Source: Octopus sinensis
Lineage: Eukaryota
Length of the DNA stretch: 64,000 nt
Reading direction: 5' to 3'
Assembly (NCBI RefSeq): GCF_006345805.1
Contig: NC_042997.1
Coordinates: forward strand, 101,928,001-101,992,000
Part shown: in pieces, positions 3,026-56,304 of the stretch
How positions within the stretch are numbered: position 1 is the stretch's first letter
Layout of the letters: the number at the start of each line of letters is the position of its first letter
Made by a program: the position numbers and the translations under genes
The notes under the pieces: model-generated
The model's database searches: none
What the model was told of the DNA's origin: nothing
The model's input: only the letters and a program-made list of their open reading frames with translations

Positions 3026-3136
3026 TTACAGCTTGGTCATTTGTGTTACTTCAATTTCCAATACAGCAGGTCCGTCTTCAGTGTCTGGCAATGATGTTTC
3101 ACTGGACTGTGATGTGGAATGAGTAAACCCAACTTC
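3026..3136 (-). CDS. SLC6 exon 14 (inferred): terminal coding exon ending TKL-stop
   Basis: tttacag|GAA GTT; [39 protein letters not shown]; phase 0 matches the exon 13 donor. Confidence 0.75.
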   Translation of the reverse strand, partial: EVGFTHSTSQSSETSLPDTEDGPAVLEIEVTQMTKL

Positions 3137-6100
3137 CTGTAAACAATGATATAAAATGTAGGTTAGCATGTACTTATAACTTAATAATTCAATATGTCTA
3201 GATGCAAGTTACACAAACATACTTGCTGCTACTAAAATTTGTGTTAGTGTCTATATTTGTAATGTGCGCTATAATGGAATCCCACCCAAACCTGTTAATC
3301 CTTAGGTTGTGGTCTCCCGAGCAAAAAACTATTGTTGACAATGGATGGATGTCTGTGGTTTGATGATAAGGATTCTGTTGTTTGGTCAACTGAATTACAT
3401 ATTCGTGAATTACCTTGCTAAATATGTCGCTTGTGAGTTGCAACACATTATTTCTGTAGTTTCTGTTAAATAAATATTGAATTCAACCAAATATGCAGGA
3501 AATACTTCTTCGTTAGTCAAGTAGTATAGAAATAAGTACACAGATTGTTGACTAGTTTTATTAACGTCTTGATGAAATGATTTGATGTAGAGATACTTAA
3601 GGAAGGAGTGGAGTTAAAAATTAATAAAATTTAACAATATTGCCAAAATACGGGCAATGGTGATTATCAAGACAATAACATAGTGAATGTATTGTAATAT
3701 TTTTGTTTGTACATTATGTCCTGTGTTCAAATCCCTTATCTGTTCTCCTTGAGTGGGTAAAGTAAGTACCAATGGTATATTAGTATATTCACTTAATTAA
3801 CCTTACCCTACACATTTTGAGAAAAGAACCAAGATTACCAAAGTTTTAGCTGTAGTAGAAGCAAATTCAATCACTTGAGGGCATACAAAATGTCTTGTAT
3901 TTCTTTCAACTCTTTACATTCTGACTTCAAATACAATTAAAATCAATTTTGCCTTTCATTCATTCAGGGCCAATGAAATAAAGTATCAGTTAAGTGTTGG
4001 GGCTGATGCTATGTACAATCCCTGCTTCCCTCAAAACTGCTGGCTTGGAGCCTAATTTAGGAATAATAGTTAAGTGAGCCATCCAAATTTTCTATGTGGT
4101 TGAGAAGTTCACATTTAATCACACAGTTCTGGATTTGTTTCTGCTGACAAGCACCTTGAGAAAATGTCTCCTGGTTTGTGTGTAGAATTTGGTGGATGAA
4201 AGCTATTGAGTGTGTGTATCTGTGTGCGTTTGTGTGTGATGTTGCCCTCTTTAAATTTAAAGGTAATGGCCCAGAAGAGTTTCCGAGACCATAGCATGTT
4301 GAAACCACTTTAGTAAGTTTACATTATCATTAAAGTAATCAAACTTTTACTTGTTTGGCTAATTGCAAATAATTCTAATTTCATTGGAAGACTAACTGAT
4401 AACTTGAAATATGAATTTCTGCTTCATTCATTTGCTAAATCATTGAATACTTTAATCAAATATTTAAAAGTTTGTTTTATGCAACAGAAGCAGTATTAGA
4501 TTAAAATAGCTATCTGTCTCTCATATTTAATGTAAATATATTGGGGAAAGGCAAATGAACTGTAGTATTCATCCAGAGATAATATTCCTTGTGGAAGTAC
4601 TGTGTTTAAAAAACACAAACACATCAGTAGCAAACAAAAATCAACCAGCAGCAATTTTTTAAACATTTAGAAGTTTAAAAACAAATTGTTCAAAACAGAC
4701 CTACACACGAAAATTAATTTCCAATATGGAATGAATTTTAATGACTGGACAAAGTTTAAAACAGAACAGAACTAACTTTTACTGCAAAAATCAGATGTGT
4801 ATACTCAAAATTTCATTACCCTTACCAACAAAAAGAAATTTTATATACCAGTCTATATCTTCTTGAGGAATGTCATATTTGAAGCTATTTCCCATTGAGA
4901 TGTGTCAAGTTCATTGAAGCAACGTGACTCGCAGAAAATATCAATTCTATTTTTAGGTAGATATTTAACATCATTGTGGAGGCGCAATGGCCCAGTGGTT
5001 AGGGCAGTGGATTCGCGATTGTAGGATCATGGTTTTGATTCCCAGACCGGGCGTTGTGAGTGTTTATTGAGCGAAAACACCCAAAGCTCCATGAGGCTCT
5101 GGCAGGGGGTGGTAGTGATCCCTGCTATACTCTTTCACCACAACTTTCTCTCACTCTTTCTTCTGTTGGTCTGCTCGCTTAGCCAGCAGGGTGGCGTCAT
5201 TTGAAGGCTAAAACAATGCGAAGTGCATTGTGACTAGCGATGTGTAGCAACATCTGATAGCCTGGTCGGTCACGTGATCACGTGATTAAATATCATTACT
5301 GGAAAACATTGAAAACATGCCTGGCCATGGGGAAATATTACCTTGCTTTGAGACAGGTGAGAGATTAACGACAGGAAGGGTATCCAATTATAGAAAATCT
5401 GCCTTAAATTCCATCTGATTCATGCAAGCATGAAAAAAGTGGACATTAAAAATGGTGATGATGATGATAATAAGGAGGCAGAGGAGGAAAAAATAGATAA
5501 TAGTATGCAAAATAAATGTGATGTAAAGATAAATCACTTACATCTGAAGGATACGTTTCGGTATGATTACCAATCTGTTCTTGTTTTAATTCTTCAAGTT
5601 CTGATTCCTTGTCACTCATGCTGACATTGTGCTTTGGTGAATTTTGAAATAACACGACTGAATGATGTTCAGGTGAGTTTTCCATTGATACGCTTGCATT
5701 ATGTTCGGGTGAGTTTTTCATTGATAGACTTGCATTATGCTCAGGTGAGTTTTTCATCGATGCACTTGCATTGTGTTCAGGTGAGTTTTTCATTGATACA
5801 CTTGCATTATGCTCGGGTGAATTTTTCATTGATACACTTGCATTATGCTCAGGTGAATTTTTCATTGATACACTTGCATTATGCTCTGGTGAATTTTTCA
5901 TTGATACACTTGCATTATGCTCAGGTGAATTTTTCATTGATACACTAGCATTATGCTCAGGTGAATTTTTCATTGATACACTAGCATTATTCTCAGGTGA
6001 ATTTTTCACTGACACTCTTCCATTATGTTCAGGTGAGTTTTTACTAAATACATTTGTATTATGTTCAGGTGAATTCTTCATCAAAACATATGCATTGCTA

Positions 6101-9100
6101 TCCGGTGATTTCTTAACTAACACATTCATAGGATTTTTTGATGAATTCTTAATCAAAATACATTGATTGTTCTCAGGAGAATTTTTCACCAGCATGCTTG
6201 TAGTCTTCATCAATGAACTGTCAGGATTGTCAGGTGACCTCATTACCAAAACATTTGCATTGCTTCCAGATAAACTCTTAATCTTTAGACCTGTATTACC
6301 ATTGGATAAATTGTCACCCAACAAATTAGTATTGTCAGGTGAGCTTTTAGTAAGTGCATCTATATTGCTTTCATTTGAATTTTTGCGTTCAAATAAATTT
6401 TTTCCTCGAAGTCCATCTGAAGATGCTTTACCTAATATAGGCTTGATTTTATCTTTGCTTGACTTACTTACTTTCTCCAAACTTTGTGGAACAGGAACTG
6501 CTTTCCTTTTGATACTTGATTTCAGGGCTTTATTTGGTATCTTGTATAGCTTGTCTGGGATATTTTCTTCTTTTTGTAGCATCCGTTCATCTGCACATTT
6601 TTGAGGATCACTATCAATTTTGACATTCAGTTTGTCTTTTTTTAACAATGTGACTTTCTTTAATTCAACATTTTCAACATTCTTTGCTCCGGTTGGACTC
6701 ACAGGAGAACTTGCTGCCCTTGTATCTTTTCTGTATTCTTTTTGTCGAACAATTTGATCATTTTTTTCCACTAAAATATTTGGTTCAAGTTTAGGAAATG
6801 GATAGTCTTGTTGTGGAAGGGATTGATTGTCTTCTGTATTTTTTATTCTGTCCAATTTGACTGAGTTGATAAAATTGTCTATATCAGGAGCCGCTTTTTG
6901 GTTCACTTTACTTTTGTCTGCTGAATTCATTACTTCAGGATGTTTTTCAAATTGTACTTCACATATGCCATTGGTAGCTTCGTAAGTACGTAAGGACCCC
7001 TCATTTTCTGCATAATCAAATGTAAGTTCTTTACTGAATCTACATTTTGGCATTTTATTTTCTAATGTCTTACTTTTACGCAGTTCTTCTCGGCTGTCAG
7101 CCATTTTAACTTTTTCCATTGATCCTCGGTAATCACTAACACTATGTTCACTATGCAAGCTTGTTCTGTCCAAACTTATGGTGCTGCTTTGACTGAAGAT
7201 GCTATTGTGACTCATCCTGACATTTTGCCAAGAAGCACCATTTGCATTATTTAAATCAGCATTTCTTGAATCTGTCTGAGTCGCAACATCATGCATCTGT
7301 ACTTTGATCTGATTCCTTGGTACAATAATTATTTCATCATCAGAATGCTCATAAAGTAATGGACGAGTTAATCTCTCTGTGGAACCTATAAGAGAAAATT
7401 AGCATGAAATCTTATATTTATTATTTTAATACATCCATCCAGCCAGCCAGCCATACATCCATATATCCATACATACATAGGCTCGTTAGCTTTGGCAGAG
7501 ACAAAATTGATCCTCAAACGCAGAACCATTCACATGGCAAAAATCTACTGGCCAATTGCATGCCATAACTTAATGTATAAGATACATACATATTTCTTTA
7601 TTACCCACAAGGGGCTAAACACAGAGAGGACAAACAAGGACAGACATAGGTATTAAGTCGATTACATCGACCCCAGTGCATAACTGCTACTTAATTTATC
7701 GACCCTGAAAGGATGAAAGGCAAAGTCGACCTCAGCAGAATTTGAGCTCAGAACGTAACGACAGACGAAATACTGCTAAGCATTTCACCTGGCGTGCTAA
7801 CGTTTCTGCCAGCTCGCCGTATAAGATACATACAGTATGCTTAATCCTCTTCCCCCAGGACCATTGTGAAACCAATAACATCATCACAGCAGAACAAGCA
7901 GCTGGGAATAAGAGTGTCTGGGGATGTGCTGAGCAATTGTTAATCAACAAAACTGTGATGTCAGAGGTGCAAGAGCATAGGAGGAACCTAATTATAATGA
8001 GGCTAGACTACAAGAAAGCTTTTGACTCTGTTCCCCACTCATGGATGTTACAAGCCCTTCAACTTGCTAAAGTTCCAGTGAGAATAGTCAAAGCCATAGC
8101 TGACCTGACTTCATCATGGGCCACCATCTTGAAATTAAGCACAAAGTATGACTGTATTATCACTGATATAATACAGTATCACAAAGGCATATTCCAAGGG
8201 GACAGCCTCTGTGATATTTATACTTTCTGTAAACTCCTTGTCATTCATGTTAAGGAAATCTGTAGGATATCTCACTGATTCCCAAGGAGACATGATGTTG
8301 TAGCTGGGACACAGTAATGAAATCCATCGGAAGGATAATCCTGAGGACAAAGAAATAAGAACCCACAATATATCAGAAGTCACAGCCACTCATAATAAAA
8401 AGGAATACTGGTGGAATGTACCAGGGAAGACCTCAATAAAATATAAGCACAACAGACCTGATATAATGATTTGGGATAAGAAGAGAAGCTGTACACAGTT
8501 GTGGAAATTAGCTGCCCATTGAATGTGAAAAAGAAAACACCTATGCTGAACTATTGAGAAATTTGCAGTTACGCTATCCAGATTACAAGTTCAAATTTAT
8601 ACCTGTAATTATTGAGGCCCTGGGATATGTAACACACTGCTAAAATATCAATCTTGAGAAATTAGGCTTCTCAAAACCAGAAAGGAGACAGCTAATTCAA
8701 AGACTACAGATCCAATCCATCACTGGAACTGTAAAAATCTGTAAAACTTTCCAGAAGTTTATCATTTAAATATATATGAGCATGGCTAGATATGCAAGTA
8801 TATCCATGAAAATACATACATAAAGCAAAACATGCAAATTTGCACATATGCATGCATACATACATACATACATACATACATACATACATACATACATACA
8901 TACATACATACATACACATACATACATACATATATGTGTATATACTGTTGCATCTTGGGAGGGTCATTACACCAATAATAACAAACACATTAACTGGTTC
9001 AATATCACTTCTTTATTGTTATTCAATTGGTTAAATATTTAACCAACTAACTAATTGATTGCTTGTTTAACTTGCAGGTTATACAACTGATTGATTGCTT

Positions 9101-11578
9101 GTTTAATGTGCTGGTTAAACAATTAATCTGTTGTTTGTCAAAGTTCTTTCATAATTATTTGCTATCTCATCAATAACATACCCTCTCTTCAAGGTCTGCA
9201 AGAATATTGCAAACCAAATGCAAAAATGATATATCTGTATCAAAGTTGATAATGTAATTTTGCATAGATTATGAAACAACTGTAACCTTTACAGGCATAT
9301 TAAAACTCTTTGCCTCTCCATGAAGCTAGCCCTGAATGAGGACTTTCACTGCTACTCATACAAGAGATGCAAGGGACAAATTCTGACAGCTAATGCCAAG
9401 GGGAACTACTTGACAAAGGCAAAGAAGCTCCTGAATAAGCTGAGGTATCCTGTTGAGCTGAGGATGATCTGGTTCTTCTCAGATGAAAAGAGCTTCTGCT
9501 AGAATCAGTTGCACAACACCCAGAACAACAGATGACTTGCCTACAATCCATGTGATGTCCCATGTATCATGAAAACCAAGTTCCCTCAAACTATGATGGT
9601 CTTTGAGGTGTATCTCTAGTGAGAGTGATGTCATGCCACCCCAAATCTTTGAACAGGGCCTTGGGCTCAATTAAGATGGCTATGTGAAGCTGTTGGAGAC
9701 TGTAGTCAAAATTTGGCTGCAGAAGGTTACTGTTAGAAAGCTATATGTGAGGCAGCAGGGTTCAGCATGTTGTCAAACCTCCCAGAAAGAGTCAGTAGTG
9801 GAGAATTTCTCTGATTTCACCAACCTCAATTTCTGACCCCCTCCCCACCAGGGATTGTCATCCCATGGATTACTATGCATGTGTTGCAGTTGGGAAAGAC
9901 ACCAACTGCTTTGCCTGCAACACCAAGGCTGAGCTGGTGGCTAAGATCGAGAACATAGTGCTCCAGCATGGCCACTGTCCAATGAATGAAAACAGGAAAA
10001 GATACAAATAAAAGATAATAGTGACTTAACTGAAAATATATTTAAACAGGATTAGGAACATGCCATGCAGTCTGCAGAATAAATAAGTGGAATGAATATC
10101 CAAGTAACTATGGTAACAAATGTAACACCACAGACTTTGATTTGTACCTTTGATTTGTTTTTAAACTGAGTGTCCTTGCACTTTTTATAAGAAATTTGCC
10201 AGATCCTTATATTTTAATAATTAATAAAAAAAAATTGCATATACATTAATACTTACCAGCAGAAGAATTGCATTGAGGATTGCTGTATGCATGGTTTAGT
10301 ATTGCTCTTTGGCGCATATCTAATTGCTTGCGATTACGAGCTAATTTTGGTGATAAGGATATCAAACTTGTTGTTTCAGACAAACTTGGGACCCGAATAC
10401 CAGAGGTAGTGAATTCAACGTGATCTAAACATATTTAAAATAAATCTATTAGACATTGGTGCAAAAATTCATTAGATAATTCTTTATTAGAAAATTCATG
10501 CACAAACATAATGTCATAATATCAACAATGTAATTAGGAAATGATGAAGGATGATATAAAACCAGAAGAAATCTGTTAATTTGTGAGAAAACATTTTAGA
10601 CATATATGGATAAATTTCAAGTTATTTAACGGATAAATCTGCTTTTATATGTGTATAGAACTCCGCTTAGTTTTTAAAGGCTGAAATAATCTTGAATGAA
10701 ACTAAATGACCTAAATTTCTTTCAATGTAACCATTTTCTTTCTACTGGCACACACAACGTGATGTCTTTGATCAGAATTATAACAACTATAAATGCGTGT
10801 TAAAAATACCGGATCTTTTCGCTTTGATCGGCAGATTTTTAAAATTTCTTTGCAACTAAAAAATTTGAAACTTCATATACCGGTAGAATGTGTTTATAAA
10901 ACATCTTTTTCTCTTAGCTTTCTTGAGAAAAATTTGTAGTTTGTAAGCTATTTCTTGTTTATTTTCTTGCATTTCGGCAATTTCAACCAATCAATGACGT
11001 CTATTGAGGTGAATTCAATATCTCCGGAGCATTGTCAACAACACTAATTTCTGGTGTCATATGAAATTGTCCCTGTTATTTATGAGAAAAAAGATACCCT
11101 GTGGCCATAAACTGAGGTGTCACACATTCTACCGGTATACGAAGTTTAAAAGTGTTTAGTTACAAAGAAATTATTTTAAAAATCTGCCAGTCAAAGCGAA
11201 AAGATCCAAAATACCATATATAACTTTGGAGCTGTAAAATTGAAATGTAGATATAATTTTCTCTGAGTAAGAGCTTTATATAGATTCTTATTCAGGACTA
11301 TTTGCTAGTTGCATAAATTAGTCATTAACTACTAAGTTAAACTTAATGGAAGTAATTTTAGTGAGTCTTTTACTCTGTCATTGATCATAGTTACTGGATT
11401 GCAGTCATGCTGCAGTACGATTATCAAAGGTTTTAGTTGGTCATTTAGGTCCCAATACTTTGTGTAGTATTTGTTTTATTGGTCAGATGAGAGGAAAGCA
11501 AAAATTGATCTGGACAAGTTTTGAGCTCAGAATGTAAATGGGTGTAATTAGATACCAAAAATATTTTGTCCAGCCTGA

Positions 11579-11622
<44 letters not shown>

Positions 11623-11625
11623 ACA

Positions 11626-11680
<55 letters not shown>

Positions 11681-11831
11681 ATCTATCTATCCATCTATCC
11701 ACCTATATATACATATATATATATATATATATAAATGGCGGTGCCCCAGCATGGCCACAGCTCGTGAGCTGAAACTAGAATCAATCAATCAATCAATATA
11801 TATATATATATATACACATATATATCTAATT

Positions 11832-11872
<41 letters not shown>

Positions 11873-14414
11873 CATATAGTACTAATTAATGACTGGACTC
11901 AAACCTCCTCGACTCAAGCCTACTTGTCTTTCCTCTGTCTTTCTCATCTCGCCTCTGACCTACTTGTCTCTCCTTTGTCTTCCTCCTTTCTTCACCTCTC
12001 ATTTTCCTTGTTGCATCCACTCCTCCAGCCCTACACTAATCATTATAGCCAGCTCTTCTCACCTAGAACATTGATCCTCTGGAATCTTCTCTCTGCTCAT
12101 GTGTTTCCTACAGGTGTTGGCTTGCAATATGCTAAACAGAACATTAATGGCATCAGGATCACTGGTCTTGGAGGATCTACAAAGCTCATGGTTGCTTCCA
12201 GACTGAGTAAGTAAAAACAAAATGCCATAACTATTCAGTTGCTATATTATAGCAAAACCATCAATGTAGACTGTAATATAACAGACTAATAATACCTTAT
12301 GAACCTAAGCCCAAATTGGATAAGATGGATACATTTCATAAAAAGCAAAAATAGTTTTCAAAGTGCAGACTATTATAATCAACCAAACTTAATTATTTTT
12401 TAAATTAAATTCTTACAGGGCATTAGTTAGGTTGCATTTATAAATTTCTAGTTTTTGCAAGTTCTCTGTTTTTACCACCCAGATAATAAATTAAATATAT
12501 TCATAATCAAGTGTCTAATTATTTGAGTTAACCGTTTAGTATTTAAACTGGCCATATCCGGCCAAAATATTTAATCTGTTTTATATTCAAACTGACCAGA
12601 TCCAGGCTCTCACACCTACCCTAAAATGTTATTCTACATTAAGTAATTACACCATCAAGATCTTGAAGATATGAGATAATGCTTGATTAATTCAAATCAA
12701 TGGGAATCAATTAGCAATATGTATGATAGACTAATCAGAACACTAAAGGGTTAAACTGTGTGTGTACATATCTAAGTTGATATTAAAAAATGCAACTAAA
12801 AACAGACTTGAATGAGGATGTTTTTGCTTTGATTTTACAAATTATTTATTTTCTTAGATATTTTATTAGCATAATTATACTATTAAATATATTAATAACT
12901 AAATATATTGTCATATTTTCATTAAAATTCTTTCAGTTTCACATAAAGAAATCATATATTTATGTCAGAATGCAAATATCTAACATTTAAATTTTTACAC
13001 TCACCACTAATGTTAATTAAATAACAGCTGAAAACAAACTTTTACAAACATGTTTGTGACTCAGGTTTATAATTATTTGTGCATTTACAGAAACAAAGCT
13101 AACATGCAAAAAAAAAAAAAATTAAAAATTAAAATTAAGCTGAAGTGAAATAAGTTTGTGCCCAGTAGAAAAATCAAGATTAATTCAGTGAAAAGAGTTA
13201 AGTGAGTCAATTATAATTTGTAGAGAATATTGTTTTAAAAAACTAATAAATGGTTATAAATTCCACAGATGATTTAAATTCAGAAACATGGCAAAAGAAA
13301 ATAAACACATCAAAAACACTTCAGACCAGTGCTCTACTGCCTCAGTCATTTCTACTGTTTCTTTGTAGAGAATATTAAATATAAACTGTTGTTCTGGGGT
13401 CTAGTTTTGAAAGTTAAGTAATTTCATGTCATAAACACAACACTCATGCATACATATACATATATACAAACACCACAATCACAGAACCCATACATATATA
13501 GCATGTCATTCATATAGAGTTGCCAAAAATTTTAATATACTATAAATTTGTAAGAAAGAAATTTGGTACATGATACTAGTAAATTAAGTAAATTTTCATG
13601 ATTTACTTGTTTTGATGTATGATAAAAGATTGTTCCCAATTCAAGGAAAGTTAGCTTTATGAGAGTTTAGGAATATAGAATATGAGAGGTGTGTTTATAA
13701 AATATGTTTTAAATACAGAAATATAAATGGAAAAGTATAAAGAATTTTTTTCGATTTCTGTATTGTAAAATGCAACAGATTGCTGGGTCAAAAGAAATGT
13801 AGAGTCATAGAGGCAAAGAGTAGAAGTCAATTATTATGGCATAAACACAACTCAGAGAGGATCAACACAGTTATGTTAGATAAAAATTTCGAAACATGGA
13901 ATATTGGACTGATGAATGATTGAAAGACAGGGGTTGATGCATCAAGGTGTCAACTAGAAGATGGGTTGATTCCCATGAAATTCTCAATTTTGACTTGCTT
14001 TCAGATGTGATAAGGATATGCATCCATAACTGGTTTAAATATTGAAATGTAGAATATTTTATATCAGTAGATATAATAATTGCAACAGTAGAGATAAAGT
14101 AGTAATTTAATAATTTAAACAAAAATAAATTTTATGAGGCTTGTACTACTTTTTAATTTTCGCAAGTAAATTCTTGTTGATAGAATCAACATCTCACCTT
14201 AGAGATGCATTACTTGATGTTGTTTACTTCTGAGTGTTGGGAAGGTTACTGTACTCTGACCAGACTACTAAGAAAACCGGTGGCCAAATGATCAAGCATG
14301 GTTTTATTTACATCTGTGAAACTTCAAGTAATGCATCCCTAATATCAATTTGTCAACATAAATATTCAAACTCCATGTCACAGATATTGAGCAATTTTAT
14401 GCCTTTTTTGTGAT

Positions 14415-14469
<55 letters not shown>

Positions 14470-17215
14470 ATATATATACACATATATATATATATATATG
14501 AGATGGGTGCAAAACAAGTTCCTGGTTTTAAGAGTGTTGTGAAAGGTCTGGTTAGAGACCCAACCTCCTGAGTTCTTTTACAGGGATTAGAAAATCTGAA
14601 GGACCACTGCAATAAGTGTGTGTGAATCTGAGAGGGGAATATGTTAAATAAAATCATAATTAACTGATCCTCCTGTATTTTCTTTTATCCAAAGCCAAGA
14701 ACTTTTCAGTTCCACCTCTTGAGTGTGTACACATATACACACACACACATATATATATATATACACACTCACAGAAACTTACATATATATATATACACAC
14801 ATGCACATATATAAATAAATATAGATATTTATACAAATAAATTATATGCATAAATCATGGACATTGAATTATGATGAAGATATACTCTGAATAGTAGAAT
14901 TAAAAAGCATTACTACATTTTAAGAATTTGTTTTGATAACCTCTTTTTGTCTGAGGCAACGGATTGCTGAAGTAGACATATCTTTTTATCAATAGAGTCT
15001 CACATAAGAATAAGGAAACCTTCTAGTAGTGTTTAATACCTAAGTTTGGATCCATTTCAAAATGTTTACTTGTTTTTGTTTGAGAGTAGATTTAAATTGA
15101 AAAAGCAAGACTTCTCATGTGAAAAATACTATTATAACAGAGTATATGATATCTTAAAACATTGCATCTTGTAAAAGTGTTAAAGTTCTAGCTATTTTTG
15201 GGAAGTCAAGGAATGATACAACTTTGCTATTTACATCACTAATAGTCGGCTGATGAGTGGTTGAGTTCAGATGCTCGGATGTCCATATTAAAAAAAGATT
15301 TATTATTATTTAGCATTACTGATTCATAGTTAGAAATGTTCCTATCCTGTCTACACTTCTGTAATATTACAGTAAAAGAAATGACAACTGTCCTCTTTGT
15401 TGCTCTTTAACTTTGACATTTTAACATTTTAACATTCTAAAAGTATTCTGACCTCAGGTTGCTTTCTTTACTATAAATATTAAAGAAGTATAGATACACT
15501 AAGGTCTTTCTTTAGTAATGAAAAATGTTGAATGCAATGTAGCTACTTCATATTTTACTGTAAAATATAAATACTAAGGTATTTGCAGATATTAGCTTAT
15601 ATTTATGGAATTATGTTTGTAATGATTATGTATTATGTAGATATTGGTTAATATTTTATTGTTTATAAACTGATGTTTACTGTTGATACCACTGTTGCAT
15701 GTTGCATTTAATTTTTCAACTTTGGTTGTAATGCACATTTGCTATATGAAGTATGAATAAAATTGAATTGAAAATTAATTTTAGATTATACTAGAGTTGT
15801 CATGGTAAGATATCAGTAGTCCAACATGTTAGTATGGAAAATACAAAGCTGCAAATTAATTCTCATGATTCACTTCAGAACTTTGCAAATTTTAATTTAT
15901 TAATTTATGTTCTAAAAGAATCCTTGTTAGCTAGCAGCCATTAGATTCATCAAAATGTAAATTTGACCACCATACCGATGTGAATTACTATTGTACACAT
16001 CGATAAAAAAAGGAAGCTTGACCTTTAGTGTCTTTGGGATTCCAAACTTGAGGCTGTAGAAAGTCCATTGATTCAGATCGAATGTCTAGATGGAGTTGTC
16101 TGGAAGGTTCTTTATCTGCATTCCTCATAACCTGCTTGTGCCGGCCATGATGCTTGATGGAGTGCAGTTCTAGTTGTGTTTTGTAAGTCCGTGCACCTGA
16201 AGCGGACACATAAAATTATGCATATATATATGTAAACATATGTATACACACATGTACACAAGTATGGACACACACATATGGACACATATAGTTTAGTATA
16301 TGTTGGTATCTGTTCCCCAGAAAAGGGAATAAAGCTGGAAACCAAATTGAATTATTTTATTATAAACTAAATCTTAAATTAATTTGCGTATAATTGCATC
16401 TTTGAAAATGAATAGCCAAAACATAATATAAGCCAATCTACAAGATAGATTAACTACAATTGAAAACTTACTCTCTAATAGCAATCAAATAGAGAGATAA
16501 ATCTAAGACCATGCTATGATCACTTAAAAGAGTTTTCTCATTCAAATCCATGTTTATTATATTCAATATTATGATTAGCTCTTCACAATAACCAAAGAAC
16601 CGTTTCTCTAATCTACAGAACAAAACAGATCACATATTGATTGAAAAAAATAAAATACTGAAATTATAAAAATAAGGTAATACTAATTTATGTAAAAATC
16701 ACCTGCAAAAACTTATATGTACATAATAACTTAGTAAAAATAATTTAATAAAAAAAAATTTACCCCAGTCAATGGGAAACCAGTATAAACAAAATTGCTT
16801 AGAAATTTGTCTAGTACTGCCTTATCACAAATCGTTAACCCACTTGCCATTTAAAGGGCTAAACATAGGGTATAAACTTTGAGTAAATTTTCTATGTTAA
16901 CAAAAATGTTAGAATATACAAACAAAATAATGTGATGATGTTTATGGTTATAGAACTTAACAGAACAGAACTTTCCATGCTATTGTGTAATCTTGAAGAT
17001 TTAGCATGGTGAACAATATATACCATTATGGTTATGTATCATGACAAGCTTACAAATCATGTACCTGCTTCAAACATACATTTTTTTCCAAGGTTTAAAT
17101 TACACACATGTGCATGCATGTGTGCACACACATGCATGCATGCACACACATGCATGCATGCACACATGCACTCACATGTATGCAACATATGCACATGCAC
17201 ACACGAGCATACATG

Positions 17216-17252
<37 letters not shown>

Positions 17253-20031
17253 TCTCATACTCACATGCTCACATTTTTTAATGTTGTTCTAAAATATCAG
17301 CGCGAATTATGAAAAAGTATTTGATATACTAACAATGGAAAAATTTCCAAAAAATGTGATCAAAGAAAAATGTTACATAAATAGACATGGCTGTATGATT
17401 AATATGCTTGCTGGTTTCAGGTTCAGTCTCACCACAAGGGCATCCTGGGATTTTACTATAGCCCTAGGCCAACCAATGCCTTGTGAGTGAATTTGGTACA
17501 TGGAAGCCCATCATATGTGTGTCTTTGTGAGTTTTCCCCAATACTGCTTGATAATGGTATTAGTTTGTTTACATCCCTGTAACTCAGCAGTTTGACCCAA
17601 GTGACCAATACAATAGGCACCAGACTTAAAAATAAGTAATGAAGTCAATATGTTTGACTCAACCTTCAAGCATTGTGACCAGCATAGTCGCAGTCCAGTG
17701 ATAGAAACCAGTAAAAGATAATAGATTTTCAGAGAATCAAAAAATGCTTTATTCTACATTAAAGATTAGGTAAGGTTGATTTTCAGTTGTTATCAGATGT
17801 AGACATAGCACTAGATTGGATTTGAACTTGGAGCCTTTATTTCTAAACTTAACGGTAGTAATGCTCACATCCATATGCCCAGTGCATGTACATGCATCCA
17901 TGAGTAAAACATCTGATAATGATTGGAGAACAACAAATCAATATGTAATGAAAATTTAAAATATCTCTTATGTCTAAAGGTGAATATAATAGTCTCAAAA
18001 ACTATAATTGTATTAGAAATAACTCATCTAAGGTATTTAAACATGTAATCATGTCATATGAATGACATTCAAAAATAGCATGTGGTCTACAAGTTAGGGT
18101 GTTTGACTCCCAGGCACTCATAAAGTAAGATCTTTATGATTGTCTTTTATTCAATCAGTCAAGTTGAAGCATATAAAGATGCATACTATGCTCAACATAA
18201 AAGCTTACAGCTTAGGCTTGAACTAATAGTTATGGGATTTGTAGTTTAGTACCATAAATCTACAAACATTTCTCTTTCTCTCTTCCCCTCCCTCACCTAT
18301 CTCTCCACTATCTGCTCCCTCCCCATCTTACACAAAGAAAAATGTAATGTACATATAAAAGAGACAAAGTTAAAAATGCAATCTGTTTCCTGAGCTTCAA
18401 ATATAGGAAATTTATTTCTAATTAATTGTGCAGAATGAGTTGTCCAATATCTAGAAATGTAGGTGACAACAATTTCTCCCACCTATCAATTAACTTCTTA
18501 TAAAAAAAGATCATATACTATAAATGATTAATTTTGATTCAGCTATTGCATAGGTAAGTCAATATATATTGGTTCTATATTTAGAGCACCATTATTCTGC
18601 TATTGTTTTTTGGATAGTTTTCAAAACCTTTAATGATGTTTATGTGGAAGTTGTTAAGCTACTCTGTTTCATTATTGAAATTTTTTTCCCATTCTCTTTT
18701 TATTGCTTCATTCTTTTCCACGGTATCACAACCACAACAATTACATCCCTCCCCTTTCACTGAAGAATGAGCACTTAACTGAACTGCTGGATAACCTACA
18801 GTTTTTCTAATCTTTCTCCCTCTATTCCAATTACAGAACAAGAAAAATAAAAATTGCTTCTTTAGTTGTTTTAAAAGCAATTCATCCTGAAAGTTGGACA
18901 CTCCAAAAAGAAACACCAGTGCAATCAACATGCTTTTTGTCCTCATGTTCATAAGACTTGGGTTCCATAAGTTGTAATGAAAGCAACTGAGTACTATAGG
19001 TGCAGGCGTGGCTGTGTGATAAGATGCTTGCTTCCCAATCACATGGTTCTAGGTTCAGTCCAACTGTGTGACACCTTGAGTGCATGTTTTCTACTATAGC
19101 CTTGGGCTGATAAAAGACTTCTGATTGGAATTGGTAGATGGAAACTGAATGAAGCCTGTCGTAAATACACACACACACACACACACATACACACACACAC
19201 ACATATATATATATATATGTGTGTGTGCGTGTGTGTATGTATATATATATATATATATATATAGTCATGCATGTGTGTCATTGTGTATGTTTTTCCCCAC
19301 CCCATAGCTTGACAACCGATTTTGGTGTGTTTACGTCCCCATAACTTAGTGGTTCAGCCGAAGATTGATAGAATAAGTTCTACGCTTACAAAGAATAAGT
19401 CCTGGGGTCCACTTCTTCGACTACAAAACCTATTCAGGCAGCGCTCCAGCATGGCCTCAGTCAAATGACAGAAACAGGTAAAAGAATAACTAGGAGAGCA
19501 GCTTCTATGAATTTAAACTTAAAAGGCATAGAAACGACTTTAAGACCTACAATATGGGATCACTTGTGTCAGTGGTTTTATAAATATTCTATTACACTCT
19601 GCTGCTGGTTGACAATAGGAAGGGCATCAGTTATAAAATCCCTGCTATTCTAACAAGACTGAAGAGATCTGTTATATCAGGAACACTTTAGAAGTAGAAC
19701 CTGTACCAAGTGCCTCATCATCGGTCACAACTTCCTTCTTTTCAGATCTTAATTTTAAGCTCCTTATCTGTCTATGCGACGCGAAGGTTTAACTTAGCGT
19801 ATTTACTAGTTAGAAAGAACTTTTAAATTTTTACTAGGGGAGGCAACTCTAAAGGCTTGTGTCAAGGTTATACAAAAGTCTTTTAGAATCAAGGGGAAAT
19901 CACTCTGGAAATTTATTAAAAAAAAATTTATTACCTACTGTTTAAAATTCTGTGAAGAAATATTTTCCCTATGAGGGCTTAGGAAGAATATTTAATACCC
20001 GAAGTAGATTTCAGGAGTCACAATCAGTCAG

Positions 20032-20112
<81 letters not shown>

Positions 20113-20124
20113 CACAGAGACAGA

Positions 20125-20197
<73 letters not shown>

Positions 20198-23100
20198 TGG
20201 TAGTCTCACATAGTCTGGGAAAGACATGCAATTTCTTGCTGAAAACTGGTACAGATGATTTGATTATCATGATCAACTGTTTGTGCTCAATCTCTCCATC
20301 AAATCGACATTGGTGGAACAGGTGGAAGGTGTACCACACGTCAGGTGTTGAAGTGATTGCAGAGCCACGTGTGATGAAGTGCTTTGCTTAAGAACACAAC
20401 ACACCACCCAGTTCAAGATTGAAGTCATGGATCTTGTGATTGTGAATGCAGCACCTTAACCACTAGGCCATGTGCCCTCATACATACATACATACATACA
20501 TACATACATACATACATACATACATACATACATAGATACATACATGCACACAAAATAATCTAGGGTAAGGAGGAAGCTATCTACAAATGAGAAAGGAGTG
20601 AATTTGGTAGAGGTAATCTTCATATCTGGAGCGTAGGAGTGTAACTACAGCTATTGGCTAGCTTCCATTCTGAGGTGATCAAATTAGTAGTTGAGTAGAG
20701 TGTTCTGAAAACATAGTAGCCACAGTAAGAACAAGGTGATGAAATTCAGTGAGCTTTGTCAACAAAGACATTTTACTTTGGGAGAAGTGCAAATTGTATC
20801 AGACTTGTGTACTTAATGTGATGTTCTGGATGAGGGAAACATGGATGCTAAATGTTGAAGATAATCCCAGAACAGAAAGAAATGCAATGAATATGTTCCA
20901 TTGAATGTGTAATGTAAGTGTACATGACGATGGAGGACAAATGAGCTAAGAAAAGAAACTGGGCATGAGAGGAATCAGATGTAGGTGTGTAAGAGAGAAG
21001 ACTTAACTGCTATGGACATGTGGTACACATGTAGAATGAGAACTAGACAAAGAAATGCCAAGCAAATATAGACGGAAGAACCTGCAAAGATAAATAGACT
21101 CTGCAGTCCATTTCGGACAAACACTCAGACAGAAATACATAAACACACACACACACACACACACGCACACACACACACATCGACAAATGCACACATAGTT
21201 TACCCTCCCACCCAAGCCACCCACAAACTCACGCACATTAGATGCAGGCATTCCTATAAGGTTAAGAAGTGCACTTCTCAACCATGGTTATGGGTTCAGT
21301 CCCACTGTGCAGTACCTTAGGCAAGCGTCTTCTACTATGGCCCCAGGCTTGCAAATGTGAGGGAAGTTGGCAGACAGAAATTTCATGAAGCCTGTTGTGT
21401 ATACACCCCCCCAACACACACATGAACATGCATGTGTGTGAGAATGTATGCATGTGTGTGCATGTGTGCGTATGTGCATATGAGAAGGTATATGAAGTAA
21501 AAAAAAAACTTGATTGATAATTCATTAAAGAATAATCTCTTTTAGGTACCAACTAAGATATTAGAAACCTTTGTGGTTGAAGTATTACAAATCACATGGA
21601 TACAAAAACATAGAGACAAATAAAACTGCTGAACTCTATATATGATATTAACTACAGTTAATACTTTCATCAAAATTATTTCTGAAGATTTTGAGTAGTC
21701 AAAGAAAAAGTTCCTGAAACAAAGTTTTGTAAACCATATTTCTTTCCTATTTCTTATATTTCAGTCAGGACAAGTAGAAATCAATGGAAAAAAAAGAAGC
21801 TTCTTACATTTAAAGAACATTTTATTGTTGTAAGAGGATATAAATGTGTTACAGGAAATGATATAATTAAACTGAATCTAATAACTTTACTGATAATATG
21901 TGCAAGATATTTAAATATATTTGATACATTTTTTTAAAAAAGAAATTATATGTGCACTAATGGTGATATTTAACATAAAAGCAAATCAAGAACTAATATG
22001 CATGCATAAGAGCAATAATAATAAAATATATAAATTTATTAATAACAATTTAGTTCTATATACTTTGAAGTCTTACCTGACACCGAAGAGATCGGTAATT
22101 TCTCCACCCCAAATCCACTAAAAGATCCTGAGCAAGTGAATACTGTTGGCACATATTCAATGTGTTCCCAATGTTTCTCAAGTGCAGGTCCCCAATCAGC
22201 TTCAGATTCACAAAGGAACCGTATTCTCTGTTGTAGTGTAGTTATTGCAAAGATATTATTAGGTATTTTGTCCATGTATAGAATAAGGTTAAATTATTTG
22301 TGAATGAGAAAACATTTACAGATCATGTCTCAGATGTATGGTAAATGTAAACATTATGTATATCTTATTATTTTAATTTGTGAGCAATAGAAATACATTT
22401 TATAAAAACAAAAGCTACTGGTTACATAAAATACTACAAAGTGTTCAAATGAAATTACTTTTGATACAAAAATTATTGATTTCTAACTTATGGCCCAAGG
22501 CTCTACATTTTGAGTAACTTTGGTAAGGATCAGATTTAGAACTCAAAGAATCATAGCTAAATACTACAGGAATTTTGTCTGATGTTTTACTGATTCAGGC
22601 AAACCATTGCAATTGCTTTTACAATTAAAGGTGAGAAGTAGGAGGTTCAATTGGATGCTAGTATTGCAGGTGCTGACACGGTAATGCACCAGCTCCAGTA
22701 TTTGAACCTCAGTAGAGGAGAGGTTAGGAAAAAGGCCAAACTTACTATCTTCAGTTTGGTTTTTGTGCCTGTCTTCAGCTATGGTCATGAATACTGGGTA
22801 AAGACTAAAAGAGTACAATCATGAATACAAACAGCTGAAATGGGGTTTGTCTGAAGGATTTCTTGGATATCAGGATGTCTCTCCATGTTGAGCTGAGACT
22901 TCTCTGCATTAAGAGGTCACAACTCTGGTACTATGGGCATGGGATAAGAATATTTTAGGAAGGAATTGCAAAACAGACTCTTCATGTCAAGCCAGCTGGC
23001 AGGAGACCTAGGGACAGACCAAGAATAAGATGGTTGGATAATATCCAAAGTCTCAGATGGTCATGCTTGGAAATCCAGCTGGAAAGTGTAATGATGGTTA

Positions 23101-26050
23101 CTTCTGATTGGATCCTATGATGGAGGTGATTGAGGACTTTAACCTCATGACCCTCACTCCAGAAATAGTAGGCAAAAAAAAAAAAAAAGGAATACTTAAT
23201 ATAATGATAAAATATAAAAAGAAAGAAAAGAATGAAAAATAAGCAAAGCAACAAATTTAACATACCTCTTTGAATGTTCCTTCAGCATAAATTAATTTGG
23301 TAATTATACAGAATGGAATTGAAATAACAGGAACTGTCATGATAAAAAATGCTGCTATATCTGACCAGTATGGATAGGCTGATGACACGAATTTTTCAGC
23401 TAAGGGTTTGTAGTCTATTACAGAGAAGATGAGCACAAACTGTTGGAAGTAAAGTTAAAAAAAGGAGAAAAAAAAATAATCATGCATTTTGATATGGTAT
23501 TTTATTTGATATTAATGTCATTTACTACATAAGTGAATTAACGTTCATTTGAATTAATGTTCATTTAAATCAGTTAATTTTACTATCCATATCACAGAGG
23601 CACAGACGTGACTGTGTTGCTAAGTAGACTGTATCCCAACCATGTGGTTTCAAGTCCAGTCCTAGTGTGCAGCACCTTAGGCATATGTCTTCTACTGTAG
23701 CCTAGGGTTGACCAAAGTCTTGTGAGTAGATTTGGTCAACAAACTGAAAGAAATCTTTATATACATAGGCACAGGCATGGCTATGTGGTAAGAAGCCCGT
23801 CGTATATATATAGTTCAAATATACAGAAAATAAAATATGAAGACAGGTAAAGGAACAACAGGTAGGTGTATTAGTTTAACTATGTGTGTGTGTCTTTGTG
23901 TCTGTGTCTGTCCCCCTATCATTGGTTGACAACCGGTGTTGGTGCATTTACATCCTTGTAACTTAGTAGTTCAGCAAAAGATACTGTTAGAATAAGTACT
24001 AGGCTTAAGAAATAAATCCTGGGCTTGATTTTTTCGATTAAAAACCCTTCAAGCATGGCTACAGTCAAATGACTGAAACAAGTAAAAGAATGTGTGTGTG
24101 TTTGTGTGTGTGTGTATTTGTGTCTAACTTTGTCTTGACATCACATAATATTTGTAAACAAGCATTCCCATCATACAACTGATATTACTCATTTCGAGTC
24201 TTCCATAATTTTGCTTGGAAACAGGTGAGGGTTGGTGACAGGAAGGGCATCCAGCCATAGAAGGTCTGTCTCAGCAAATTTTGTCTGACCAATTCAAGTA
24301 TGAGAAAGTGGATGTTGAATGATGATGATGATGATAATAATAATGATGACAATGAGAATGAGGAAGAGGATATCAAATTAAAGAGCAGCTGCTTGTTAGC
24401 TATCAGCATTTTCTGTTTTGGTATTTTATTTATAGATAAAAGGAGAATGGAGTCCTTTGAAAATTTACAAATTTTCATATTTTTTAACCCTTTAGCATTC
24501 TGATTACTCTGTTAAATGTAATACTTAGTTACATTGTTTTGAATTGATCATACCTTATCTCCTGGTTTTGAGATTTTGATGGTACAATGGTTTATCTTTA
24601 AGATCTCATTGTAGAGTAGGTGCAAGAAGACAAATTTGGCTGGTTAAACATAAAACAAGTGGAATTTTGGCCCAGGTTTAGATGCCTGGTTTAATTGCAA
24701 TATATATTTCTTTATTTCCCACAGGGGGCTAAACATAGTGGGGACAAACAAGGACAGACAAAGGGATTAAACTGATTACATTGACCCCCCAGTATGTAAC
24801 TGGTATGCATTTAATCAGCCCCGAAAGGATGAAAGGCAAAGTCGACCTTGGCAGAATTTGAACTCAGGACGTAGTGGCAGACGAAATACCGCTAAGCATT
24901 TCGCCTGGCCTGCTAACGTTTCTGCCAGCTCGCTGCCTCAATAACAAAAACAACAACAATAATAAAAACAAGAGCACTCAGAGAGTGCAAACTTCTGCCA
25001 AGGCAACACCAATGTCTTCTCAATGATTAGCCGGAGATGATTAGAATGGGAATATCTGAAATAAACTGGACTGCTCTCACAAACGAGAATACTAAAAATT
25101 AACCTGACCGCTTTCAAACAAAAAATAATCTAAATATGTAACAGTAGACAAAATACTGCTAAGCATTTCGCCCTGCATACCAACAATTTTGCCAGCTCGC
25201 TTCCTTCAAAGCTTTACTGCAGTATAAGAGAATAGTTTAAGGCAGTGAGATGGCAGAATAGTTAGCACACTGGGGAAAATGCTTAGAGGCATCTTGCCAA
25301 TCTTTACTTTCTGAGTTCAAATACCACTGAGGTTGACTTTGCCTTTCATCCTCTCAGGGTTGATAAAAGAAGCACAAGTTGAGCACTGGGGTTGATGTAT
25401 TCACACAACCTTTTCCCTGAAACTGTTGGCTTTGTGCCACAATTTGAACCAATGTAGGAGAATAGTATCTGTTACAAACAAGTTGCTAAATACAAGTAGA
25501 ATAAATCATTAAAAAAATTATCTAATTTTAATTATGAACTCTCAAATTTTACTTATTAAAACTACTTAGATCAATTACATGATACTGACTATGTATTGTG
25601 ACGCATCTGTAAGATAAGATGATAACCCCTGACAGCAATTGAAAGAATTTCTCTATGAGGGACAGAATATTTTGAATATGACCATAAGTATAAATATTTT
25701 GTCTTGCTCTAAGATATGATCTTCAGAAAGATATTGTAAAGAACAAAGGAAATATCGAACGTATGACAATACAATGTATATATCTTTTATATATATATGT
25801 ATATATGTATATATCTTTTATATATATATATGTATATATGTATATATCTTTTACTTGTTTCAGTAATTAAACTGTGGCCATGCTGGGGCACCACCTTGAA
25901 TAATTTTTAGTCAAATGAATCAGCCTCAGTACTTACTTTTAAGCCTGGTACTTATTCTATTGGTCTCTTTGCCAAACTGCCAAGTTATGGGGTCATAAAC
26001 AAACATCACTAGTTATCAAGCAGCAGTGGGCAACAAGCACAAACACAAAG

Positions 26051-27701: not shown

Positions 27702-29063
27702 GTAATAGAAATAACTACAAGGGTATCAAACTGAAGGTCACAGTGAGGGTCATAGACCATCTCATTAGGGACAGAGTCTGCTTACATGAGATGCAGTTCG
27801 GTTTTGTGCCAAGTAGAAGCACTACTGATGCCATATTCCTGGTTTGACAACTGCAGGAGAGATACCTAGCTAAAGATAAACCCCTATACTTAGCTTTTGT
27901 GGAGTTGGAGAAAGCCTTTGACAGGGTCCCTCAATCCCTTATCTGGTGAGCGATGTGGAAACTGGAGATTGATGAATGGTTAATATGGGCTGTACAGGCC
28001 CTATACAGAGAGGCCATTAGTAAGGTTAGGATTGGCAATGAGTATAGTTAAGAATTCTGGGTAGAAGTAGGGGTCCACCAAAAGCCCCCAGTCCCCTTTT
28101 ATTCATCATAGTCCTCCAGGCAATAACAGAGGAATTCAAGACGGGTTGCCTCTGGGAGCTCCTCTATGCTGATGACCTGGCCCTCATAGTAGAATCACTA
28201 GCGGAACTAGAAAAGAAATTTCAGGTGTGGAAGCAAAGTTTAGAATCAAAAGGCCTTAGAGTTAATGTCGCAAAGACCAAAGTTCTAGAAAGTAGGAAGG
28301 CAAATTCATCACACACACCCTCAGGTAGGTGGCTCTGCACAATCTGTAGGTAGAAACTCCATAAGATGTACCCAGTGTAAGCTATGGGCACATAAGAGGT
28401 GCAGCAACATCAAAGGAAGATTAACCGAGAAGATAGCTTTCGTGTGCGGCAGATGCACAGGGGCAATAAATACCACAGATGCTCAGAAAACAGATTCCAT
28501 CACACTCCAGGGGAAGAAACTAGAAGTAGTTGATAGCTTCCATACCTAGGTGACCAAGTTAATAGTCAGGGTGGATGCTCAGAGAGTGTTATCACTTGAA
28601 TAAGAATAGCCTGAGTAAAGTTCAGAAAGCTTCTACCCCTACTGGTGACAAAGGGCCTCTCGCTCAGAGTGAAAGGTAGATTGTACGATGCATATGTGTG
28701 AACTGCCATGCTTCATGGCAGTGAAACATGGGCCGTGACTGCGGAGTACATGCATAGGCTCAAAAGAAATGAAGCTAGCATGATCCGCTGGATGTGTAAT
28801 GTCAGTGTGCACACATGACAGAGTGTAAGCACCTTGGACATAAGAAGCATTGGATGTGGCGTGCAAGAGAGACGTTTGCGCTGGTATGGTCATGTACTAT
28901 GGTTGGATGAAGAGAAATGTGTGAAGAAGTGCCACTCCCAAACAGTTGAAGGAATTCAGGGTAAAGTGTCTTGTCAAGAACACAACACGCAGCCCGGTCC
29001 GGGATTCGAGCTCACAATCTCACGATCGTAAGCTCGACGCTCTAACCACTGAGCCATGTGCCT

Positions 29064-44593: not shown

Positions 44594-44644
<51 letters not shown>

Positions 44645-45352
44645 TCAATAACAACCACAAGAACAACACAAGATCAAAGCCTTCCCACCAGAAATCACCA
44701 AAAACATGTAATAAAAAGAAATACAAGTAACTGCAGAATATGTGGTGATAGAGAAGAAATAATAAATCATATTGTCTCTGGCTGCTCAGTCCTGGCTAAG
44801 AAGGAATATATTCACAAACACGACAGAGTTGGGACCTATATACACTGGAAGCTATGCCAACACTATGGAATAACAACAGAAAAAAGATGGTATAGGCACA
44901 CACCAGAAAAGATCAAAGAAAATGAGAAAGCAGCCATACACATGCAGATATAGTTGTCAGAATTCACTGAGAAAAAAAATGCTTTTTAATCAATGCATCA
45001 ATACCAACAGATGACAATGTTTCTCTAAAAGAAATGGAGAAACTTTCAAAATACAAAGATCTGGAAATAGAGGTAACTCAAATGTGGAGACTAAAAACAG
45101 AAACAATTCCTTTTATAGTAAGTGCATTAGGTGCGATAAAAAAAACATTTAAACAAATACATAACAAAAACACCAGGACTTACAAGTATATATAACATAC
45201 AGAAAATAGCACTACTAGGCACTGCACACATCCTATGCAAAACACTTTTAATAAAGTGAAAATAAGAGCACCACAACAAACCACAGCACCTACCCAAGGT
45301 GCACAGAGTTGTGCTCGGTAGTGCAGTGAAAGTATGTGATAAAAATAAGACT

Positions 45353-52677: not shown

Positions 52678-52708
<31 letters not shown>

Positions 52709-52715
52709 TATGCAT

Positions 52716-52767
<52 letters not shown>

Positions 52768-52819
52768 GTATGTATGTATATGCATATATATATATATATG
52801 CATATACATACATACACAC

Positions 52820-52875
<56 letters not shown>

Positions 52876-52948
52876 CATGTATATACATATATATGTATAC
52901 ATACATACATACATACATACATACATACATACATACATACATACATAC

Positions 52949-52979
<31 letters not shown>

Positions 52980-56250: not shown

Positions 56251-56304
<54 letters not shown>

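Follow-up and report, generated by a model that had tools for sequence, protein, structure and literature searches.

Introduction

Transporters of the SLC6 family remove neurotransmitters and import amino acids, and their short C-termini control export from the endoplasmic reticulum (ER), PDZ anchoring and regulation by kinases. Several of these C-termini end in PDZ ligands, as in GAT-3 (...THF), BGT-1 (...THL) and DAT (...LKV, with PICK1). Here we analyze a 64,000-nt stretch of the Octopus sinensis genome (NC_042997.1, positions 101,928,001 to 101,992,000; referred to as the window, with coordinates counted from its first nucleotide), the minus strand of which carries a gene for a protein of this family with an unusually long C-terminal tail. 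The protein belongs to the SLC6, or neurotransmitter:sodium symporter, family (PF00209). It has in common with vertebrate GlyT2, GlyT1 and SLC6A7 (PROT) a core of 12 transmembrane segments (TM), the motifs of TM1, TM6 and TM7 and, after TM12, the segment ER(I/L)..L....DWGP. The window region is the 3′ half of the gene. We consider it likely that a single gene is involved, one for a Na+/Cl−-type amino-acid transporter of a mollusc clade within the GlyT/PROT group, and that its tail of about 765 to 823 residues is disordered and serves in docking and trafficking. In the literature searched, the coverage of which was partial, on long-tailed SLC6 proteins, mollusc GlyTs and disordered tails of solute carriers, this architecture is undescribed. 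A first-pass annotation of the window had likewise known of no described SLC6 protein of this kind; no paper was found that contradicts it, but the architecture is already present in public predictions under the name "uncharacterized protein," as for LOC106884409 of Octopus bimaculoides.

Results

Gene model and join between core and tail

The upstream exons were placed by tblastn of orthologues, and each border was then read individually (Table 1). The in-window model has 14 exons, 4122 nt and 1373 codons, with AG/GT at all borders and the terminal codon as its sole stop. Exons 11 to 14, when chained, give 2274 nt, a multiple of three, with one stop, at the end, and exons 12, 13 and 14 each have one open frame, as required. 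With TM12 ending at about residue 608, the tail makes up 56% of the model and is about 765 residues long. The open reading frame (ORF) that spans exon 13, of 616 residues, is the longest of the window, followed by one of 217 residues within a microsatellite; as it is about three times the length of any other, the ORF of the tail is far beyond chance. By all-frame translation and border reading, all four tail features of the first-pass annotation were located. Its description of an exon 11 that reaches a canonical phase-1 donor without a stop, and of three joining exons that bring the protein to at least 1373 residues, was reproduced exactly, and its estimate of a tail of about 765 residues, over half of the protein, agrees with the model. 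The exons and joins of the earlier gene model therefore stand, but a cassette exon, 11b, had been overlooked and was found via isoform X1 of O. bimaculoides (see below). Neither a start-codon exon nor the N-terminal linker conserved in other molluscs is present in the window, where 54057–64000 was searched.

A query of 707 residues of tail alone returned seven proteins, six of which carry the SLC6 domain PF00209; the domain is recorded for the orthologues P0001, P0002, P0004 and P0006. The best match to the tail, XP_014791269.1 of O. bimaculoides (isoform X2, 1193 residues), has PF00209 and the same core–tail join, and is 95% identical to the tail over 100% of the query; XP_014791260.1 (isoform X1, 1251 residues, P0031) has the same join. 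LOC106884409 is the orthologue of the window gene: it is 99% identical over the covered part of the core and 95% over the tail, joins exons 11, 12, 13 and 14 in the same way and shares the exon-12 module, the TQT motif and the TKL end described below, but differs in the copy number of a 12-residue repeat. The O. bimaculoides models start within exon 4 (MNNTKEQ...), without TM1–3, and it is the window that supplies the exons for these segments.

Evidence from RNA comes from a squid-like cephalopod. Contig L001 (Logan, SRR27666061, 3263 nt) encodes protein P0002 in one uninterrupted ORF of 973 codons, which starts in the TM6–TM7 region and terminates in ...EIEVMQMTKL. As this ORF crosses core and tail free of introns and an A-rich 3′ end comes after it, the contig is RNA-derived. 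By blastn, exon 11 corresponds to positions 805–940 of the contig and exon 12 to 941–1103, so that the junction falls at the identical base. In a genome contig of a decapodiform-like cephalopod (L003), 11 kb suffice to contain the orthologues of exons 11, 12 and 13, all on the same strand and arranged as in the window. The exon-12 module also directly follows the SLC6 core in Patella, Batillaria, Lymnaea, Elysia, Mya, Tegillarca and a bivalve transcript; in Patella, Batillaria and the bivalve transcript the whole series of core, module, tail and PDZ-type end is seen, and the partial models of Elysia and Lymnaea show core, module and long tail. Thus, the core–tail join recurs in other cephalopods, in gastropods and in bivalves.

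These observations bear on the alternative that exons 12 to 14 were attached to the transporter model by mistake and are in fact an independent gene downstream of it or a chance ORF. The intron between exons 11 and 12 is 11.6 kb long, exon 11 could end by read-through at a stop (22041–22039) overlapped by an AATAAA, and some public models consist of the tail only, such as those of Haliotis (P0022, 242 residues) and Bulinus (P0025, 445 residues). However, an intron-free RNA contig spans the core–tail junction, two NCBI octopus models share the join, and the squid contig keeps the exon order. In every mollusc model long enough to show the core, PF00209 lies upstream of the module, and the module occurs nowhere but immediately behind an SLC6 core. 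Moreover, fragments of the P0022 and P0025 type begin within TM12 or exon 11, and are therefore truncated models rather than independent genes. A separate gene is effectively excluded. The earlier assignment of exons 12–14 to the SLC6 gene is thus upheld by the O. bimaculoides models, by RNA and by exon order; RNA across the exon 11/12 junction, which had been named as a check, is seen in the contig of another cephalopod, at the same base, and the persistence of the tail exons behind the transporter in other assemblies, likewise named, is seen in the decapodiform-like contig for exons 11, 12 and 13.

A different kind of fusion was observed among the mollusc models. In five of them (P0035, P0059, P0027, P0023 and P0026) the long-tailed transporter is preceded by a second, divergent SLC6 core, and a conserved linker (...WGPG...PDYVICTPD...LTANLYIPNL...) connects the two. 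An RNA contig (L002; upstream part at 1–480) carries, in this order, TM10–12 of such an upstream paralogue, what appears to be an unspliced intron containing a stop codon, the linker and the complete ORF of the long-tailed protein. Removal of the obvious GT...AG introns breaks the reading frame, which is recovered only with GTGTTC, a weak donor. These fusions could represent a tandem protein of 24 TM, read-through between tandem genes, or merging of models.

The exon-12 module

The module encoded by exon 12 directly follows the DWGP segment, with a pattern that begins DHVEFTT.G.RVPSLS. One stretch of 12 residues is invariant in six aligned full-length proteins of cephalopods, gastropods and bivalves, and AILNHAY.NPQ is kept in 12 of 12 sequences, exon fragments included. 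Octopus exon 12 shares 94.6% identity with its counterpart in the squid-like transcript, which puts it at the upper end of the core exons (74–95%). Short ORF fragments of environmental contigs all stop right after ...NPQC..SG; the module therefore corresponds to an exon of its own, and the phase-1 intron that follows it is conserved. An exhaustive search of 1.84 billion representative proteins with a profile of the module gave 20 matches, and all those that are named come from molluscs but one, an alga, whose match is weak (E-value 1.3e-4) and was taken as spurious. When compared with the PDB, the profile gave no meaningful match. A 17-residue motif of the exon (10320–10270) is predicted to form a helix, for which no counterpart is known and which may bind a partner protein or the cytoplasmic face of the transporter itself.

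In the heterobranchs Lymnaea (P0005) and Elysia (P0024), the core is 33–36% identical to that of octopus and has lost several canonical residues of TM6, TM8 and TM10, while the invariant 12-residue stretch of the module is intact. In this lineage the module thus looks more constrained than the transport core.

The squid-like transcript carries 37 extra residues, GSPLIKAKSHSKIRVNETGMISNQKMRNTMGELTLIN, between the equivalents of exons 12 and 13 (1104–1219 of L001; 5658–5864 of L003), part of which derives from a longer exon 12; nothing convincing that corresponds to this insert was found in the octopus window.

Length and predicted disorder of the tail

Counted from the Trp of DWGP, the window protein has 745 further residues, or 803 with the cassette exon. 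In 62 other proteins of the GlyT clade, from many phyla, the median is 56 and the range 35–129, so that the octopus tail is about 13 times the usual length, in keeping with the initial view that it is exceptionally long for an SLC6 protein. Other long tails, measured in the same way, are those of Elysia (755 residues), the squid-like cephalopod (725), Patella (386), Lymnaea (at least 307), a bivalve (282) and the brachiopod Lingula (362).

The tail is cytoplasmic and predicted to be disordered except for one short helix. A Pfam search with the 815-residue tail gave no match. In the window model, all 102 hydrophobic 19-residue windows belong to the core, and the maximum Kyte–Doolittle value over 19 residues of tail is 0.87; the tail accordingly has no membrane segment, and by composition it falls within the disordered part of the charge–hydropathy plot. 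Structures were predicted with AlphaFold2 for orthologues of the window protein, namely full-length Patella (alignment of 71 sequences) and O. bimaculoides X2, and read through the predicted local distance difference test (pLDDT). In Patella, the core is mostly above 90, with the expected run of helices, and values fall below 50 at residues 646–696 and 712–1016; the only ordered element of the tail is a helix at 701–711 (MRQQAILNHAY), with a pLDDT of about 69, which coincides with the module motif. In O. bimaculoides X2, residues 522–1193 are below 50 and the same helix appears at 511–521 (pLDDT of about 68–69 over the two orthologues). Low pLDDT, charge–hydropathy and the lack of a Pfam domain or membrane segment all agree with the earlier proposal of a disordered tail.

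Conserved motifs at both ends of the tail

A comparison of the octopus tail with the squid-like one resolves a conserved proximal zone of about 220 residues, a spacer of about 490 and a conserved distal zone of about 55. The proximal zone is made of exon 11 (86% identical to the squid-like sequence and 100% to O. bimaculoides), exon 12 and the first ~110 residues of exon 13. Sliding identity runs at 12–19 of 20 positions up to about residue 828 and at 2–8 of 20 beyond it, and the spacer is about 20–25% identical overall. Three islands are conserved along the tail: the exon-12 module, an LC8-type motif, DVATQTD, and a class I PDZ-type end.

The LC8 consensus, [D/S]KX[T/V/I]Q[T/V][D/E], is found in disordered regions, with Asp favored at position −4 and Asp, Glu or Pro at +2 (PMC3078936, PMC6607443). 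The octopus DVATQTD (HDVATQTD, residues 754–761) fits five of the six specified positions, with Asp at −4, a small Ala at −2, the TQT anchor and Asp at +2, and lies in a stretch with pLDDT below 50. A TQT-type motif is conserved in Patella, Haliotis (as VQT), Batillaria, Elysia, Mya, a second bivalve and Lingula. The C-terminal T-K-L, followed by the stop, fits the class I PDZ ligand S/T-x-hydrophobic. The conserved end reads PAV(L/I)(E/D/Q)(I/V)EVT and then QMTKL, HF, RF or KF, as in AILEIEVMQMTKL (squid-like), PAVIDVEVTHF (Patella), PAVIEVEVTRF (Batillaria) and PAVLQVEVTKF (bivalve); that of Elysia is ESTKL. Because both are conserved at aligned positions across mollusc classes, the TQT motif and the PDZ-type end are not chance matches.

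The brachiopod Lingula anatina has an SLC6 protein of 1092 residues (P0046), annotated as proline-transporter-like, with a tail of about 360 residues. In this tail, MILVRKPKKPVPMEDKCIQTDP is similar to IIIVPR...ATQTD of the molluscs: DKCIQTD, which fits all specified positions of the LC8 consensus, is preceded by MILVRKP. The protein ends in ETQM, and TQM fits class I only loosely; the profile of the mollusc exon-12 module has no match in it. The long tail may therefore predate the molluscs.

The spacer includes a coding minisatellite, in which 14 Ser-Pro (SP) sites recur at an exact spacing of 12 residues. Its copy number and sequence differ from those of O. bimaculoides and the repeat is absent from the squid-like P0002, and it is therefore young and specific to the octopus lineage. 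Through the SP repeats, octopus has probably gained sites for proline-directed phosphorylation recently. The NAS sequons in the repeats were considered as N-glycosylation sites and rejected, as no TM follows TM12 and the tail is cytoplasmic. Of the docking motifs first proposed, the TQT motif and PDZ-type end thus have aligned conservation in cephalopods, gastropods and bivalves, while the SP repeats turn out to be a young octopus minisatellite.

The transporter core

A phmmer search of the PDB gave GlyT2 as first match (582 bits, E-value 1.3e-173, query residues 43–636), followed by PROT (544 bits) and GlyT1 (541 bits). GLGN in TM1, QVFFSLS..WGG in TM6 and SSYNKFHNN in TM7 are present in octopus as in GlyT2, and among the transporter motifs compared, the octopus core departs in two places, with Ser in place of an Asp in TM8 and Met in place of a Glu in TM10 (ICMCV vs. 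IFELV, exon 9). The Glu is found in GlyT2 and in invertebrate GlyT1-like proteins. The TM8 Asp is an Na2-site residue, and the TM10 Glu is part of the third Na+ site of GlyT2; the two changes may alter the Na+ stoichiometry.

In a neighbor-joining tree of 597 well-aligned columns, which is rough and has no support values, the long-tailed mollusc sequences form a clade of their own, apart from the mollusc GlyT1-like proteins and from vertebrate GlyT2. Orthology to GlyT2 (SLC6A5) was rejected on the basis of this separate clade and of Met, not Glu, in TM10. Orthology to GlyT1 (SLC6A9) was also rejected: the mollusc GlyT1-like proteins cluster elsewhere, and O. sinensis has a separate GlyT1-annotated protein of 666 residues (P0067), of the same SLC6 subgroup but only 44% identical, in which the tail has the usual short length, TM8 reads GLDS and the TM10 Glu is kept. 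As P0067 falls outside the long-tailed clade, the window gene is a paralogue rather than GlyT1 of octopus. It appears to be a distinct mollusc SLC6 paralogue of the GlyT/PROT group, and in octopus its product is probably still a transporter, most likely of a small neutral amino acid.

A cassette exon and a possible short isoform

Exon 11b lies within intron 11. By tblastn it is identical at 58 of 58 residues to O. bimaculoides X1 and is absent from X2; no counterpart was found in the squid contig L003. With this exon the tail reaches about 823 residues. If left unspliced, exon 11 reads 13 codons further to a TAA that overlaps an AATAAA (22040–22035), and a short-tail isoform formed by retention of intron 11 is possible. 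By our own estimate, the local base composition would by itself give roughly one AATAAA in every 0.8 kb.

The long tail could then be real but minor or restricted to some tissues, with a main product that is short-tailed through intron retention or alternative polyadenylation. The read-through stop and AATAAA, 36–42 nt beyond the exon 11 donor, fit this view, as does a Lottia model (P0037, 639 residues) that ends by such read-through after ...TTITG, and alternative splicing is evident nearby, in octopus with exon 11b and in the squid-like transcript with the 37 extra residues after exon 12. However, the GTAAGA donor is strong, the Lottia model may be an ab initio artefact, and no transcript of a short form was found. 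Moreover, the conservation of exon 12 equals or exceeds that of most of the transmembrane core, and this speaks for its regular translation. A short-tailed main product is unlikely, although some weight must be given to it.

Feature coordinates and intronic elements

Table 1. Coordinates, in the 64-kb window, of the exons of the long-tailed SLC6 gene and of elements within its tail
Feature	Coordinates	Strand	Description
Exon 1	54056–53801	−	SLC6 core; exons 1–10 comprise an N-terminal stub and TM1–TM12
Exon 2	50971–50840	−	SLC6 core, tblastn of orthologues
Exon 3	49338–49195	−	SLC6 core, tblastn of orthologues
Exon 4	44025–43824	−	SLC6 core, tblastn of orthologues
Exon 5	41043–40911	−	SLC6 core, tblastn of orthologues
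Exon 6	36455–36217	−	SLC6 core, tblastn of orthologues
Exon 7	33536–33412	−	SLC6 core, tblastn of orthologues
Exon 8	31601–31357	−	SLC6 core, tblastn of orthologues
Exon 9	27588–27391	−	SLC6 core, tblastn of orthologues
Exon 10	23439–23266	−	SLC6 core, tblastn of orthologues
Exon 11	22227–22077	−	After TM12, ends ...PISSVS; acceptor ...caacag, donor TCAG/GTAAGA in phase 1, no in-frame stop
Candidate read-through end (retained intron 11)	22076–22035	−	Sequence reading only; predicted short-tail isoform
Cassette exon 11b	16196–16023	−	174 nt, 58 residues, phase 1 to 1; acceptor cttcag, donor gtcaag
Exon 12	10424–10257	−	168 nt, 56 residues, phase 1 to 1; acceptor tttag, donor gtaagt
Exon 13	7385–5542	−	1844 nt, 615 residues, phase 1 to 0; acceptor ttatag, donor gtaagt
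IIIVPR	7332–7315	−	Conserved start region of exon 13
LC8-type DVATQTD	7290–7270	−	Exon 13; HDVATQTD is residues 754–761
Coding minisatellite	5665–6081	−	36-nt unit, 11.6 copies, 88% matches, 12-residue repeats, within exon 13
Exon 14	3136–3026	−	Acceptor ttacag; last 36 codons, TKL, then TAA (3028–3026)
Conserved C-terminal 14 residues	3070–3029	−	Exon 14; ends T-K-L, class I PDZ-type ligand

A fragment of a mariner-type transposase (PF01359, E-value 5e-10) lies on the plus strand at 63679–63879, upstream of the first in-window exon, and an ORF in intron 3 (44498–44950, plus strand) has a weak zf-RVT match, under the Pfam cutoff. Two intronic stretches, 28200–29030 and 60386–61140, have similar sets of ORFs and look like retroelement remnants, although those of their ORFs that were submitted to Pfam gave no match. 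Intronic microsatellites of the (CA)n, (TG)n, (CATA)n and (TATG/ATAC) types occur at 19950–20200, 20425–20620, 30700–31370, 52540–53170 and 8851–8932, and yield the longest spurious ORFs of the window, of up to 217 residues.

Discussion

The tail of this SLC6 protein would act as a flexible arm for docking and trafficking rather than as a folded domain. The DVATQTD motif may recruit LC8/DYNLL, a dimeric hub protein that would bring two tails together or connect the transporter with further clients of LC8, and the C-terminal T-x-hydrophobic sequence could bind a PDZ scaffold and so anchor the transporter at a site in the membrane. There is precedent for a membrane protein of another type, as the Kir4.1 channel co-purifies with LC8 (PMC11999606); no SLC6 member is described as an LC8 client in the literature searched.

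Several points weigh against this interpretation. Few sequences cover the tail in the AlphaFold2 alignments, and the low pLDDT there is therefore only indicative, and the octopus prediction was obtained with the O. bimaculoides model, which has no TM1–3. A TQT anchor by itself is no guarantee of LC8 binding, since many TQT peptides are non-binders (PMC6607443); position −3 of DVATQTD is Val, not Lys or Arg, and the Lymnaea orthologue has no TQT motif. For O. sinensis, the long, cassette-containing and candidate read-through isoforms are predictions from sequence. In the core, the TM8 Asp of the GlyTs (GLDT or GLDS) is Ser across the long-tailed clade (GLST in octopus, codon 31497–31495) and the TM6 Trp varies within the clade; substrate and coupling may therefore differ from those of the GlyTs.

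The TM8 Ser, in the whole clade, would also suit a transceptor, one of the roles tentatively put forward in the first-pass annotation, in which the core would serve chiefly as an amino-acid sensor and the tail would pass the signal on, with net transport secondary or lost; the heterobranch cores, diverged and deprived of canonical residues next to an intact module, point the same way. However, the octopus, Patella and bivalve cores keep the TM1, TM6 and TM7 motifs of working GlyTs, and arthropod GlyT-like proteins carry Gly at the TM8 position. Mutagenesis of GAT-1 reportedly indicates that Ser or Thr in TM8 is compatible with Na+ binding (compare Thr354 of LeuT), which also counts against a transceptor. 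Finally, the Pfam search detected no signaling domain in the tail, whether of a kinase, a GTPase regulator or another kind. We regard the transceptor as speculative and quite improbable, and a transporter with a docking tail as the likely state in octopus.

The conserved islands could also mean that the tail turns the whole clade into an LC8-dimerized signaling or anchoring platform, in which the tail is at least as important as transport; the retention of the module by the fast-evolving heterobranch cores is a hint in this direction. A further possibility is that some molluscs make, via the conserved linker, a tandem protein with two cores and 24 TM. Taken jointly, these two proposals are rather unlikely.

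A clade that carries putative docking signals on a tether of 300–800 residues, predicted to be disordered, is a natural system in which to study how the length of a tail and its multivalent docking influence the location, pairing and turnover of a transporter, and it includes an extra module that is nearly unchanged since the divergence of cephalopods, gastropods and bivalves. As a mollusc-specific SLC6 lineage, it should also be kept apart from the ordinary GlyT1-like gene when "GlyT" markers are used in cephalopod neuroanatomy.

In relation to known systems, the putative LC8 site, which is conserved phylum-wide, is like those of the LC8/DYNLL clients (PMC3078936, PMC6607443) in having a TQT motif within a stretch predicted to be disordered, but has Val in place of a basic residue at −3. 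The hallmark extension of vertebrate GlyT2 is N-terminal, whereas that of the long-tailed clade is C-terminal. The THF end of Patella and the TRF end of Batillaria are of the same type as that of GAT-3. In such PDZ-ended SLC6 transporters, however, the ligand lies tens of residues past TM12, whereas the candidate ligand of the octopus protein is 750–820 residues away, at the end of a tether predicted to be disordered.

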